This document shows, piece by piece, positions 4,701-12,789 of a stretch of DNA of 64,000 bases. The DNA lies in the NCBI RefSeq assembly GCF_006345805.1, contig NC_043023.1, positions 16,988,001-17,052,000 of the forward strand, given 5' to 3'. Every line of letters starts with the position of its first letter. Within the stretch, counting starts at the first letter, position 1. Made by a program: the position numbers and the translations under genes. A model generated the notes under the pieces. That model was not told the DNA's origin and ran no database searches. It saw only the letters and a program-made list of their open reading frames with translations. Origin of the DNA: Octopus sinensis (Eukaryota).

Positions 4701-4762
4701 CTATCTATATCTATTAATATAGAGAGTTACTGAGATGACCAGGGTTTCCACAAGTGTTTTAA
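4701..4762 (-). CDS. Gene A terminal coding exon (IKTLVETLVISVTLYINRYR*)
   Basis: Strong acceptor ttttttttcttttcag|TT; phase 1 matches the preceding donor; LVISV.LY is shared with B. Confidence 0.7.
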
Positions 4763-4863
4763 CTGAAAAGAAAAAAAACAATGAAGGAAAAAATAGTTAG
4801 AAAATAATGAGGTTAATTCTAAATTTCTCGATGATCATGATATATATATATATATATAATATA

Positions 4864-10500: not shown

Positions 10501-12789
10501 TTTTCCATCCAGAGCTAGTTGAAGCATTATTTTTTTCTGTATTATCTAAAACATCGTTTTCAACATCATCTGCTTCATTTGATGATGAAAGAAAATCAGA
10601 AAAACACTTCTTCATCGCTGTTTAAATCATCTATTTACGACTGGATTTCTCCCATTGATAAGGGCCGCTTACGCTTAGGCGCATTTAATTTAGCAGACGC
10701 TCGAGCCTCAACTGATGACGGTCATATCTGTGTAAAGTTTTTGTGACACCAATAGGATTTTAAAGAAAAAGGAGGTGCATTCCAGAAGTTTCCAGGATTT
10801 TTCAGGAAATACATTTATTTATTTCAAAGAAAGCTGAGTGAACCGGTCCAATTCCTCGTTCCACATCTCGCTCAGGATTGTGTTTGGTGCAAAGCACACT
10901 TCTAAGGCATGCAAAGTGATTATCTCGTTCCAGTGGTGTGCCTGAAATTATGATGTTAAAGTCCAGAAGCGAAGAATTCGGAATTGATTAGGCGAAAAAC
11001 TGAGATTTCTTAGAATTTACAGTGAGCTCAAAACGTTGATACGCAATGGTGAAATAACTGACAGCTTTTTGCGTTTCTAAGCTTGAGTGACCGAATGACC
11101 ACGTTGCCATCGACGAAGTGAAGTTCTGAGATTCGCTTGGAACTGGTAAGATTCTTTGACTGAAACCTCACCAGGCTGAAGAGTCTTTCATCAAAACGAT
11201 ATCTGATGTCCTTTCCCAGCTGATCCGAGGGAAGTTCATAGATCATTGCAGCAAGGTATAAGGAGAAAAGCATAGTAGCGGGTACACAAACTTGTTTCAA
11301 TCCAGATGTAATTGGGAATTCTTCTGAGAGTCCATCACGAGGAAGGAAACGCCCAGTCATACCATCGTATGATCAGGGAGAAGAAATAATCAAGGGCCAT
11401 CCATATGGTTGGTCTTGGTACTCTATAAAAAACCTTTTGCAGATCATAAAAGATTAGGAAAATTCGGTTTTGTTGTTCTCGAAACTTGCTTTGGAATTGT
11501 CTGGCGCAGATCGTGTCTATGGATCCAAGTAATGCTCGGAAAACACACTGGGATTCTGGAAGGATTCTTTCTGCGATGACGTGGAGACCGTTCAAGGGTA
11601 TTGGAGCAAAGATCTTTCCTAAAATAGTAAGTAGCGAGATTACACGATGGTTTCCATAAGATTTTCGATCTCCGTTCTTGAATATACTGATTATGAGAGC
11701 ACTAAGTGCGTCAGGTCGGCAATGTCTCGTTTACGAGTCTACGTATGAGTATAGCTTCCTTAATTCTTAATTTACCCACATTTCTTTCACTGGCTCAATT
11801 GTGACTGTTATGCTTTTGTCGGTGTTCCGGCATCTTTTCTGAAGGAGGAGGCTATCGTGTTAAGATGTTCTTTGATGCGGACGTGTAACGGTTTTGTTGT
11901 GCTACCCACATAGAACTTATTGCATTTGTTACATTGTATTCTATACACAACATTTACCCGTTGGCATAAATCTATGTCACGGATGGGACAGTTTGTTAGT
12001 TTGCATTGATTGTTGTCGCTTGTTCGTTTCTTTGCAAGCATACATAGATAAAACATACAAATCTGCGCATAGATACATTCATACATAACATACATACAAA
12101 CTTACAAACAAAAATACCCTGTTGTTGATGTTGCAATTCCAGTGAAGGAGCCTGGATTTAGGTTAGGAACCGGTTCGTTCTCTAATGGCAAGAAATCCTG
12201 AAATAAACTGAATAATAATAAACATACACGCATATATACATACATACATGCATACATACATACATACATACATACATACATACATACATACATACATACA
12301 TACATACATACATACATACATACATACATAAACGTGTGTGTGTGTGTGTATGTGTGTGTATGTGTGTATGCGTGCGTTTGTAAAACAATTGGGATAATGA
12401 TGAAAATATAATACAGAAATTAGAAAACTATGCCAGAAAATTGTGAATTACATACTGTTTCCGGAGAGTAAAATATACGATGAACACGTGCAATCCTGAT
12501 CTTTAATTTCTTCGTTGTAAAGCGATCGATGCATATAACACGGGCCATTACAATAGCTAAAATATTGGCACTCATCGCGGGAAAGACACAGACTCGCACA
12601 TTCTAAACGAGATGACGCGGTTTTTGTAGTTTTATTCTCATCAATTAAGCATTTTGATGCTGTGGTTTTTCTGAAGAGACCCTCTCTATTCGTTGGTTCT
12701 CCGGCAGTTACAAGAGTCACGAAAAGCAAAAGTGTCAAAGCTGGCAGCAGAAGAAGAGGAATCGAATGGTACTGAATTGTTGTCTCCAT
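4701..12789 (-). CDS. Gene A: 5 coding exons, 245-aa secreted protein (signal peptide + PAN/apple-like domain + uncharacterised C-terminal domain)
   Basis: Hand-spliced join(12789-12456, 10291-10200, 8230-8082, 5660-5560, 4762-4701); all GT-AG, phases 1/0/2/1, open frame throughout. Protein: [245 protein letters not shown]. The same structure is conserved in paralog B. Confidence 0.8.
5560..5660 (-). CDS. Gene A internal exon (YPDFYITSTEARIQAKRLSGIDEKYDIYFKKDG)
   Basis: Acceptor tagtttcag|T, donor GGT A|gtaagt; 101 nt, phase 2 in and 1 out; the same frame is open in both paralogs with a 3-nt indel, while the phase-0 frame stops in both. Confidence 0.78.
6606..6930 (-). mobile_element. Non-autonomous Helitron (ortholog at 37737ff in unit B)
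   Basis: 3' end CCCGAGCAAGGCCGGG hairpin + CTAG|T; TA-rich 5' end. Confidence 0.6.
7160..7495 (-). mobile_element. Non-coding repeat flanked by (TAA)n on both sides ('repeat X'; also ~22696-23210, ~42035-42530, ~59915-60430)
   Basis: Shared 3' end gtgtcactttgatggca..actgctct.tcact followed by (AAT)n. Confidence 0.7.
8082..8230 (-). CDS. Gene A internal exon (VKFQLSG...[12 protein letters not shown]...TFNN)
   Basis: Acceptor ctttctgttttcag|GTG, donor AAC AA|gtatgt; 149 nt, phase 0 in and 2 out; B differs by an in-frame 6-nt deletion. Confidence 0.82.
8700..9800 (+). mobile_element. Decayed ORF-like segment, possibly LINE ORF1/gag-like, in intron 2 (ortholog ~46740-47880)
   Basis: Lys/Arg/Glu-rich broken reading frames, GC richer than flanks; no decisive motif. 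Confidence 0.3.
10200..10291 (-). CDS. Gene A internal exon ([31 protein letters not shown])
   Basis: Acceptor tttttattgctgattcag|G, donor AAG|gtaatg; 92 nt, phase 1 in and 0 out; same length in B. Confidence 0.82.
10800..11720 (-). mobile_element. RTE-clade LINE reverse transcriptase fragment (gene A only)
   Basis: ERILPESQCVFR, FYDLQKVFYRVPR, GLKQVCVPATMLFSLY, ISELHFVDGN, ISGTPLERDNHFACLRS; absent from intron 1 of B (604 vs 2164 bp). Confidence 0.85.
11770..12030 (-). mobile_element. Penelope-like GIY-YIG endonuclease fragment
   Basis: CQRVNVVYRIQCNKCNKFYVGSTTKPLHVRIKEH. Confidence 0.85.
12456..12789 (-). CDS. Gene A ATG exon: signal peptide + PAN/apple-like domain (8 Cys)
   Basis: Acceptor ttttcag|GA ATG; hydrophobic leader [18 protein letters not shown]; C-x3-C-x5-C-x2-F-x-Y...C pattern ([22 protein letters not shown]) typical of PAN; donor GGA AAC A|gtatgt (phase 1). 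Confidence 0.88.

Follow-up and report, generated by a model that had tools for sequence, protein, structure and literature searches.

The interval 4701-12789 of the window (the whole stretch of DNA analysed, 64,000 nucleotides in length) corresponds to one copy, A, of a gene that has been duplicated in tandem and whose exons have diverged from those of copy B more than the surrounding sequence has. Nucleotide differences amount to 10.4% in the exons and 4.6% in introns and non-coding sequence (Fisher p=2e-8), such that exon change is ~2.4 times that of introns. The greater similarity of the introns had been pointed out in the first-pass annotation of this DNA and is borne out by these values, and the excess of exon over intron change is family-wide. 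We consider it moderately likely that diversifying selection and exchange between paralogs have together produced this pattern, in a tandem birth-and-death family of putative secreted binding proteins.

Copies A and B form a tandem segmental duplication in which positions 5498-25663 (A) align with 36623-62877 (B); copy B lies ~36.5-38 kb to the right of copy A in the window and extends over ~26.7-56.4 kb. The peptides quoted in the first-pass annotation all lie where it had placed them, on the minus strand. The gene model includes one additional upstream exon (MNLK-G, 19159-19171), so that the exon originally called exon 1 is the true exon 2; here the upstream exon is referred to as exon 0, and the other exons keep their numbers 1-5. 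The features of the two copies are as follows.

19159..19171, minus strand: exon 0 of copy A, coding part (ATGAATCTGAAAG, encoding MNLK plus base 1 of the Gly codon), with a GT donor after it; identified by pattern match, its homologue in O. sinensis models being their first coding exon
12456..12791, minus strand: copy A exon 1, encoding the signal peptide and PAN/apple domain; acceptor cag/GA, METT start at 12789, donor gtatgt, phase 1 end
12583..12660, minus strand: PAN variable patch, ASKCLIDENKTTKTASSRLECASLCL in copy A; copy B counterpart at 49101-49178
10726..12315, minus strand: Penelope-like retroelement fragment in copy A intron 1, with a GIY-YIG match
10200..10291, minus strand: copy A exon 2, 92 nt; DNL/EDM cassette at 10214-10218
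8082..8230, minus strand: copy A exon 3, 149 nt, in which the C-terminal beta domain begins; hypervariable patch HQANAISNSLG at 8120-8152
5552..5666, minus strand: copy A exon 4, with the STEA patch at 5627-5638; its acceptor lies at 5666 (family-type NFSYP) or 5660
4701..4762, minus strand: copy A exon 5 (IKTLVETLVISVTLYINRYR, then stop), last beta strand of the C-terminal domain
56377..56389, minus strand: copy B exon 0, coding part, identified by pattern match
48974..49306, minus strand: copy B exon 1, encoding the signal peptide and PAN domain
48278..48369, minus strand: copy B exon 2
46155..46297, minus strand: copy B exon 3; counterpart of the hypervariable patch at 46187-46219
36677..36794, minus strand: copy B exon 4, with ISNNN at 36752-36766, an internal donor after 36685 and the stop at 36677-36679
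27175..27224, minus strand: copy B exon 5, with a second identical copy at 26656-26705

Exon 0 of copy A sits inside an upstream block that is 99.6% identical between the copies, and the Penelope-like fragment of its intron 1 is missing from B and found in the O. sinensis copies S1, S2 and S3. Judging by its splice signals, exon 4 of copy A may give rise to two isoforms, a long one through the internal donor GGTA/GTAAGT after position 5560 and a short one ending at the TAA stop at 5552-5554. The tail of paralog P0003, homologous to copy A exon 5, is a confident strand in its AlphaFold model. Two further exon candidates were rejected: the segment 12117-12197, which has good splice signals, has no counterpart in B, falls within the retroelement fragment and would break the frame, and a conserved open reading frame at ~5868-5990 is without a usable donor and superfluous for the frame. 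Both A and B retain the eight cysteines, open frames and AG/GT splice sites, as the first-pass annotation had described; although 70 nucleotide differences and four in-frame indels separate them, neither copy has acquired a stop or a frameshift or lost a cysteine or splice site. Exons 1-4 are also intact in six O. sinensis relatives.

The product is predicted to be a secreted protein of ~250 aa, composed of a signal peptide, a PAN/apple domain and a C-terminal beta-sandwich. Copy A falls below the Pfam cut-offs for PAN_1 (PF00024; 14.9 bits vs 21.4) and PAN_4 (PF14295; 15.9 vs 27), copy B scores are weaker than those of copy A, and eight of 13 relatives have sub-threshold PAN matches (best E=0.005). 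The fold was evaluated on P0003, which is about 54% identical to A and B and stands in for both, and its AlphaFold model contains a PAN fold of about 75 residues, a central helix on a beta-sheet, with pLDDT about 81-90 over the domain. In Foldseek comparisons this domain matches the plasminogen PAN domain (probability 1.00, rmsd 2.9 A, 76 columns), the HGF N domain (0.99) and factor XI A4 (0.98). The PAN cysteine framework (Cys 47, 64, 68, 74, 80, 84, 100 and 102 in A numbering) is kept in A, B and nearly all relatives. The C-terminal domain has no match in Pfam, and a Foldseek comparison of the beta-sandwich with the PDB returned nothing significant and no solved relative; the sole lead is a weak DUF7922 match in a distant amphioxus relative, at residues matching the family profile. 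Protein searches for the full-length family returned members from Octopus only, several tandem copies being present in O. sinensis too. Targeted literature searches on octopus or cephalopod apple- or PAN-domain proteins found no paper describing the family, and a search for octopus lineage-specific secreted genes under positive selection gave nothing.

Differences between A and B are strongly clustered (index of dispersion 3.55, matched in 0 of 5000 permutations) and spare the conserved core. The first-pass annotation had placed 11 of the 13 exon-1 replacements around PAN Cys1-Cys3 and had described the second half of the domain as nucleotide-identical, and both observations hold, the replacements falling within codons 44-69 and the identity of A and B covering codons 70-102 of exon 1. 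Codons 76-100 of the PAN second half (~75 nt) are identical in all five close copies, counted as two species. Within codons 46-69 (72 nt), inside the PAN variable patch, there are 16 changes unique to B, with A having the consensus of the O. sinensis copies, and three of these 16 are silent where ~0.3 would be expected. At the exon-3 patch, four of 11 silent changes are packed into an adjoining 7-codon span. The signal peptides differ by one replacement and a one-codon indel.

A count of ~52 replaced and ~8 silent-only codons had been reported, and our recount is close to it, with 51 replaced codons (13, 5, 15, 11 and 7 in exons 1-5) and 11 silent-only codons (5, 0, 4, 2 and 0). The conclusion drawn from that count, that replacement far exceeds silent change, does not survive normalisation, since ~78% of coding sites are non-synonymous and raw replaced and silent counts therefore cannot carry an inference of selection. 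There are 65.5 non-synonymous differences over 559 sites and 17.5 synonymous differences over 155 sites, which corresponds to the neutral ratio of 3.6:1. The NG86 dN/dS comes to 1.04 over all five exons and 0.87 over exons 1-4 (Fisher p=1), dN is equal to or below dS in 43% of bootstraps, and the maximum-likelihood omega is 0.9-1.1 (2dlnL<=0.12 against omega=1), or 1.6 for exons 3-5 (2dlnL<=1.6). The pairwise dN/dS of A and B is not different from 1. As a matter of method, raw replaced-to-silent codon counts overstate selection, and the informative measures for families of this type are the contrast between exons and introns and site tests at the level of the family.

Change at the intronic rate, which the first-pass annotation had named as an outcome that would speak against its interpretation, is not what replacement sites show: non-synonymous sites differ by 11.8% between A and B against 4.6% for introns, a 2.8-fold proportion (p=3e-10). 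Synonymous sites differ by 9-10%, about twice the intron value (p=0.03-0.05), with a synonymous excess in the B lineage (p=0.006). In each of the lineages A, B and S1 non-synonymous change is 0.039-0.050 per site and intron change 0.018-0.022, and the excess is significant separately in the three (p=0.006, 0.0015 and 0.039); dN/dS is above 1 on no single lineage, and summing the lineages A, B and S1 gives a ratio of 0.92. S1 is an O. sinensis copy that was treated in the analysis as belonging to another species than A and B, and its gene-body introns are equidistant from both (A-B 4.1%, A-S1 4.1%, B-S1 4.4%, with ~2% unique changes each), so that, if it is taken as coming from another species, the low A-B intron divergence does not result from homogenisation after the split. 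B and S1 are positional orthologs, having a LINE insertion and downstream flank in common, and differ by 15.5% in exon 3 vs 4.4% in introns. In paralogs P5 and P6 the flanking introns are 92% and 98% identical, exon 3 is 68% identical, and its hypervariable part 38%.

Site models comparing M2a with M1a on eight family members give 2dlnL=108 for the whole gene, 71.6 for the 3' block (p=3e-16, 27% of sites, omega 7.6) and 10.8 for the 5' block (p=0.004), using our own implementation with naive (NEB) posteriors and a model without recombination. Overall, the positively selected class comprises 13-27% of sites with omega about 7. For the 3' block, 2dlnL is 69 and 48.8 after gap removal, 50.7 without A and B, and 49.1 without S2 and S3; nine null simulations gave values of 0-2.2. 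Recombination among paralogs, clearly present in this family, inflates site-model tests, and among distant paralogs the hypervariable parts align uncertainly; both points are caveats for such models. Sites with posteriors above 0.9 include A173-185 (the HQANAISNSLG patch), 204-205 (STEA), 150-153 and 223-226, among others, and the PAN patch has a single site at posterior 0.9. On the AlphaFold model of P0003 the high-posterior sites are mostly in coil between strands, and the mapping onto an AlphaFold model that the first-pass annotation had proposed thus places most selected sites in predicted loops of this paralog, an indirect support for its suggestion of binding surfaces. Its proposal of diversifying selection fares differently at two levels, finding no support in the pairwise omega of about 1 and gaining it from the eight-member site model with omega about 7. 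Among the hot patches that it singled out, HQANAISNSLG and STEA are in the selected class, and the PAN patch contributes its one site at that posterior.

In the explanation that we favour, the family would be a set of secreted binding proteins subject to birth and death in tandem arrays. The signal peptide, the cysteine framework, the PAN second half and the WQKVFEM...IYLYWD and FNGTGTNSTSWFQ cores would be held constant as a scaffold, while diversifying selection would drive short patches, chiefly in the loops of the beta-sandwich and less so in the first PAN strands and helix, and gene conversion or unequal crossing-over would move short segments between paralogs. Such movement would account for the block-wise differences and for the raised silent sites inside the blocks. 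Traces of exchange include a 4-nucleotide DNL/EDM cassette that A has in common with S3 and that sets the two apart from B, S1 and S2, seven mutually incompatible partitions among the 13 informative sites of exon 1, and a mosaic in which similarity is about 94% across the 5' halves of all five copies (A, B and S1-S3) but only 69-75% between A/B/S1 and S2/S3 in the introns on either side of exon 3. The ~2-fold elevation of silent sites and the shared short cassettes indicate that some of the divergence travelled between copies and was not fixed substitution by substitution. Counting against the favoured explanation are the pairwise dN/dS, which is not above 1, and the raised synonymous sites, which selection on point mutations alone does not predict. 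We infer secretion, a binding function, contact through the variable loops, and how much selection and exchange have each contributed.

Selection for novelty would be unneeded if short gene-conversion or template-switch tracts from the family simply overwrote exon segments, a purely mutational patchwork that we regard as unlikely but a substantial contender. It would fit the strong clustering of A-B differences, the doubled silent sites with the four silent changes in seven codons beside the exon-3 patch, the surplus of silent changes in the B exon-1 patch, the shared cassette and incompatible partitions, and the several B-derived states equal to those of distant paralogs (TCA65 in P4, CGG67 in P3 and P6, ACx49 in P4 and P5). 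S1 bears on the same point: it has exon 4 deleted and a 1-nucleotide deletion in exon 3 and looks like a pseudogene, and because this probably dead copy has the same exon-3 excess, a mutational process fits it as well as selection does. However, a search of nine copies gave no donor for any large patch specific to A or B, the copies of the window and six O. sinensis loci being without them, and about eight of the 17 B-derived states recur in some paralog, roughly as many as chance would give. On either side of exon 3 the introns, homologous among distant paralogs at 69-98% identity, have escaped overwriting; exchange only shuffles variation, and unalignable patches beside introns that are 92-98% identical still need fast change; and the site models give omega about 7-10 in the variable patches even without A and B. 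It is improbable, to a further degree, that intron divergence understates the age of the copies, conversion having homogenised introns and conserved exon parts while selection kept old patch differences. Some homogenisation is evident from the non-coding identity along the duplication, which is 99.57% in the upstream 9 kb, then 97%, and falls to 94-96%, and the PAN second half shared by five copies and the mosaic 5' halves fit such a process, but the equidistant introns of A, B and S1 (taken as another species) allow no A-B homogenisation since the split, and the positional orthologs B and S1 contrast in the same manner between exon 3 and introns. This proposal also requires selection for diversity, departing from the favoured explanation in timing and not in kind.

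Still more doubtful is an octopus-specific hypervariable recognition system (immune-, venom- or gamete-like) with loops diversified by exon-targeted segment switching or hypermutation, not by ordinary mutation and selection; an exon-targeted mechanism would explain the joint rise of silent and replacement change, the confinement of exon change to patches, and the excess in a probably dead copy. Relaxed constraint, with one copy a decaying pseudogene and its replacements neutral, had been feared in the first-pass annotation, and the pairwise omega and the broken appearance of S1 would accord with it. It is nonetheless very unlikely, as neutral decay predicts equal change in exons and introns, frames and other coding features are intact in A and B, the differences avoid the conserved core, and the 2.8-fold non-synonymous excess over introns recurs in each of three lineages. 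We give the least credence of all to an assembly artefact in which two haplotypes of a single locus have been placed in tandem as A and B. The nearly identical 9-kb upstream block is what such an artefact would produce, but gene-body non-coding divergence is 4-6%, equal to the distance to S1 (treated as another species), a 1.6-kb retroelement is present in A only and ~7 kb of transposon sequence in B intron 3 only, exon 5 lies at 0.8 kb in A vs 9.5 kb in B, the downstream flanks differ, and O. sinensis likewise has several tandem copies.

Venom and immune gene families are known for the same signature, exon change above intron change in tight patches. In the genes described by Doley et al., similarity exceeds 85% in intron segments and profound differences are limited to exons (PMC2474615, PMC2711939). 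The octopus family resembles venom-type accelerated evolution/ASSET in being a tandem multigene family with conserved signal peptide, cysteine scaffold and introns, in which short exon segments are swapped for very different sequence and coding change exceeds intron change; for P5 and P6 the comparison is of introns 92-98% identical with 38% identity in the hypervariable exon part. It is unlike those systems in its fold (PAN/apple plus a novel beta-sandwich), in coming from a cephalopod and being known here from genes alone, in a pairwise replacement rate that is not above the silent rate, and in direct evidence of paralog exchange through the shared cassette.

PAN/apple domains are extracellular and bind protein or carbohydrate. 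With PAN/apple proteins such as plasminogen, the HGF N-terminal domain, factor XI, prekallikrein, apicomplexan microneme adhesins and Sarcocystis SML-2, the octopus proteins share a predicted disulfide-stapled helix-on-sheet fold (Foldseek probability 0.96-1.0 for the P0003 PAN domain to PAN/apple structures), but their sequences are below Pfam cut-offs, they join one PAN domain to a beta-sandwich that is uncharacterised, and full-length members were found in Octopus only. Primate red/green opsins and MHC genes are duplicated genes in which exons are kept apart, introns are similar, and short tracts are converted between copies. The octopus tandem paralogs are alike in having greater exon than intron divergence and shared short tracts; unlike the opsin and MHC cases, where introns were homogenised after duplication, the comparison with S1, taken as another species, shows no A-B intron homogenisation since the split.

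Cephalopods have no antibody-type adaptive immunity and have many lineage-specific gene expansions. The octopus family is a new case, one not annotated as venom, in which the origin of exon-restricted hypervariability can be considered. As a secreted, two-domain tandem family with hypervariable loops, it would, by analogy with the systems above, be a good candidate for a recognition repertoire directed at pathogens, prey or gametes.

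The two neighbouring apple-domain genes, copies A and B, both on the minus strand and each encoding a PAN/apple domain followed by a C-terminal beta-sandwich, lie in a tandem segmental duplication in which A 5498-25663 matches B 36623-62877 in a self-comparison of the window. The DNA has a eukaryotic, octopus-like character, with SINEs and microsatellites. Identity along the duplication is uneven: 99.57% over 9 kb (16771-25663 vs 53989-62877) that lie upstream of both copies and include the first coding exon, then about 97% at 12910-15009 and, with indels counted, 88-93% in the gene bodies. 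The near-identity upstream, set against 4-6% intron divergence in the gene bodies, hints at a promoter region that was homogenised recently, or at an assembly problem. Both copies have open frames and canonical AG/GT sites throughout, and the peptides quoted in the first-pass annotation all lie on the minus strand where it placed them, with partners in copy B. A further 5' exon encoding MNLK-G was found, so that its exon 1 is really exon 2; its numbering is retained below.

Exons and insertions of copies A and B (window coordinates)
A 19159-19171; B 56377-56389: additional 5' exon, encodes MNLK-G
A 12456-12789; B 48974-49304; minus: exon 1
A 10200-10291; B 48278-48369; minus: exon 2
A 8082-8230; B 46155-46297; minus: exon 3
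A 5560-5660; B 36685-36788; minus: exon 4
A 4701-4762; B 27175-27224; minus: exon 5, with an identical duplicate in B at 26656-26705
38182-38703: Pif1-helicase (Helitron-like) ORF, B intron 3
42732-43847 and 44663-45130: LINE zf-RVT ORFs, B intron 3

If exon 4 instead continues as far as the stop (A 5552, B 36677), the product is a short isoform with GSK at its end, a form also seen in some annotated relatives. The exon 4 acceptors are paired, 6 nt apart (ttag/TTTCAG/TTACCC; 5660-5666 in A, 36788-36794 in B), and alternative splicing here is possible; the upstream acceptor, which adds the residues FS, is preferred in most relatives' models. The last exon of B lies in a tandem duplicate (26509-26741 and 27029-27261; 94.5% identical, coding part identical) surrounded by long microsatellite arrays. 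Intron 1 of A carries a Penelope-like retroelement fragment (10726-12315; corresponding B site 48802-48847) that is common to the close O. sinensis copies S1, S2 and S3 and deleted in B; its ORF at 11808-12095(-) matches GIY-YIG, and ORFs at 11028-11595(-) resembling reverse-transcriptase remnants have no Pfam match. About 7 kb of B intron 3 (38103-45523) are exclusive to B relative to A.

The first-pass annotation had read the A-B differences as replacement far in excess of silent change. Its counts are essentially reproduced (replaced codons 13, 5, 15, 11 and 7 in exons 1-5; silent-only codons 5, 0, 4, 2 and 0), as are the clustering of 11 of the 13 exon-1 replacements within codons 44-69 and the nucleotide identity of codons 70-102 in the second half of PAN. 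The counts nevertheless show no excess over neutral expectation, since non-synonymous positions make up 559 of the 714 sites. By NG86 the five exons give dN=0.127, dS=0.123 and omega=1.04 (0.87 for exons 1-4 only), with no significant difference between dN and dS (Fisher p=1; dN<=dS in 43% of bootstraps). Our own pairwise maximum-likelihood codon model gives omega of 0.9-1.1, and 1.6 for exons 3-5, none differing from 1.

The real anomaly is the divergence of exons versus introns rather than the ratio of replaced to silent codons. A and B differ at 4.6% of the 4068 non-coding sites left after alignment and gap masking, and at 10.4% of 675 exon sites (p=2e-8), in agreement with the earlier impression that introns are more similar than the variable exon patches. 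Non-synonymous sites differ at 11.8% (p=3e-10 vs non-coding), silent sites in codons with unchanged amino acids at 9.0% (p=0.046), and four-fold degenerate sites at 10.1% (p=0.03). The differences are overdispersed, with an index of dispersion of 3.55 in 30-nt bins that was equalled in 0/5000 permutations. Exon 3 is 81% identical and its hypervariable part 65%, with surrounding introns at 96-98%. Within the second half of PAN, a run of about 75 nt (codons 76-100; A 12505-12579, B 49023-49097) shows no difference, even at silent sites, among the five close copies from two species, a sign of constraint on the nucleotide sequence itself or of repeated homogenisation.

The pattern recurs across the family, for which intact exon 1-4 models were constructed for six O. 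sinensis paralogs. Pairwise omega is 0.36-0.96, and the introns flanking exon 3 are conserved better than the exon itself, being alignable even where proteins are only ~50% identical; between paralogs P5 and P6 they are 92% and 98% identical, with exon 3 at 68% and its hypervariable part at 38%. Codon site models (M2a vs M1a, our own implementation) give 2dlnL=108 for the whole gene. In the 3' block (exons 3-4) a class holding 27% of sites has omega 7.6 (2dlnL=71.6); this result is robust, with 2dlnL of 69 and 48.8 once gapped and gap-adjacent columns are removed, 50.7 without A and B, and 49.1 without S2 and S3, compared with 0-2.2 in null simulations (n=9). Sites with posterior >0.9 (62, 150, 151, 153, 173, 175, 176, 178, 179, 181, 182, 185, 199, 204, 205, 223, 225, 226) are mainly in coil between predicted strands, and take in the HQANAISNSLG (exon 3) and STEA (exon 4) patches singled out earlier. 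The 5' block gives 2dlnL=10.8, and the PAN patch is weakly supported as a selected region.

Non-coding DNA of an O. sinensis cluster (CM016885.1, ~17.17-17.40 Mb) is about 4-5% different from the window. A, B and S1 are equidistant over 2504 intron sites (45, 54 and 53 unique changes respectively), and thus there has been no homogenisation between the introns of A and B after the split from S1; the downstream flank and a LINE insertion forming part of B intron 3 are common to B and S1, making these positional orthologs. Exon 3 has 16, 9 and 12 unique changes in A, B and S1 among 142 sites, 3-5x the intron rate. Polarised non-synonymous change in exons 1-3 is 0.039-0.050 per site on these lineages versus 0.018-0.022 in introns (p=0.006, 0.0015 and 0.039), with omega about 0.75-1.2. 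In S1 (L001, LOC118768098) 1 nt of exon 3 is deleted (about 27756-27906), ~400 bp that include exon 4 are missing (about 33820-34260 of L001), and the final exon of the NCBI model is cryptic and intronic; this copy is probably dead or misassembled. The annotated protein P0001 (L002, LOC118768100) is a chimera of two neighbouring copies, in which exon 1 of one (25451-25783) is followed by exons 2-3 of the other, 21 kb off (48940-52004), and then by an odd terminal exon. A 103-aa histone-fold (CENP-T_C/TAF-like) gene model is annotated across L001, L002 and L006; the apple-domain cluster would lie inside its giant intron, or that model would be an artefact.

Several features are evidence that paralogs exchange segments. 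Exon 2 differs between A and B at six nucleotides, four of which form a single cassette, DNL vs EDM, one form being common to A and S3 and the other to B, S1 and S2, and the 13 informative sites of exon 1 fall into seven mutually incompatible partitions. The 5' halves (exon 1, intron 1, exon 2) of all five copies are ~94% alike, yet the introns beside exon 3 are just 69-75% alike between A/B/S1 and S2/S3. The B lineage accounts for nearly all of the change in exon 1, with 16 substitutions in 72 nt, of which three are silent; some B states match those of distant paralogs, and no donor was found among the copies compared.

Protein searches match only Octopus sinensis and O. bimaculoides, as 'uncharacterized' or 'Apple domain-containing' proteins, and we found no paper on this octopus family. 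Searching 1.84 billion representatives with a family profile returned 19 proteins at E<=1e-30, each one checked for source being from Octopus, with O. vulgaris among more distant PAN-plus-domain relatives. Weaker matches cover just part of the C-terminal domain and come from mosaic extracellular proteins, those of amphioxus included: its first half (profile ~129-190) has weak relatives within large proteins (P0028, P0038, P0042), among them an amphioxus ZP/EGF protein that also matches DUF7922 weakly at the same residues, together with Sushi and C-lectin proteins. The domain may predate the octopus family. Pfam PAN matches fall short of threshold. An AlphaFold model of the paralog P0003 (pLDDT 73.7, pTM 0.69) has a PAN domain, then a beta-sandwich in which the exon-5 tail is a confident strand; Foldseek matches the N-terminal domain to PAN/apple domains of plasminogen, HGF and factor XI (probability 0.98-1.0) and finds no match for the C-terminal domain.

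Relaxed constraint is ruled out, since exons have changed more than introns and neither copy has a broken frame. That A and B are haplotypes separated by assembly is unlikely, as they diverge by 4-6% in non-coding sequence and their structures differ greatly. The silent-site excess and the behaviour of S1 speak for a purely mutational patchwork, which we consider a less probable but serious alternative. The diversifying selection proposed in the first-pass annotation is partly supported, by intron-referenced and family-level tests, and fails the pairwise one. Among described phenomena the closest are accelerated exon evolution and exon segment switching (ASSET) of snake venom genes, in which intron segments remain >85% similar and exon segments are replaced (PMC2474615, PMC2711939). 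On balance we lean towards diversifying selection on loop patches combined with short-tract exchange between copies, the latter producing the blocky differences and raised silent divergence; these genes would then form a birth-and-death family of putative secreted binding proteins.
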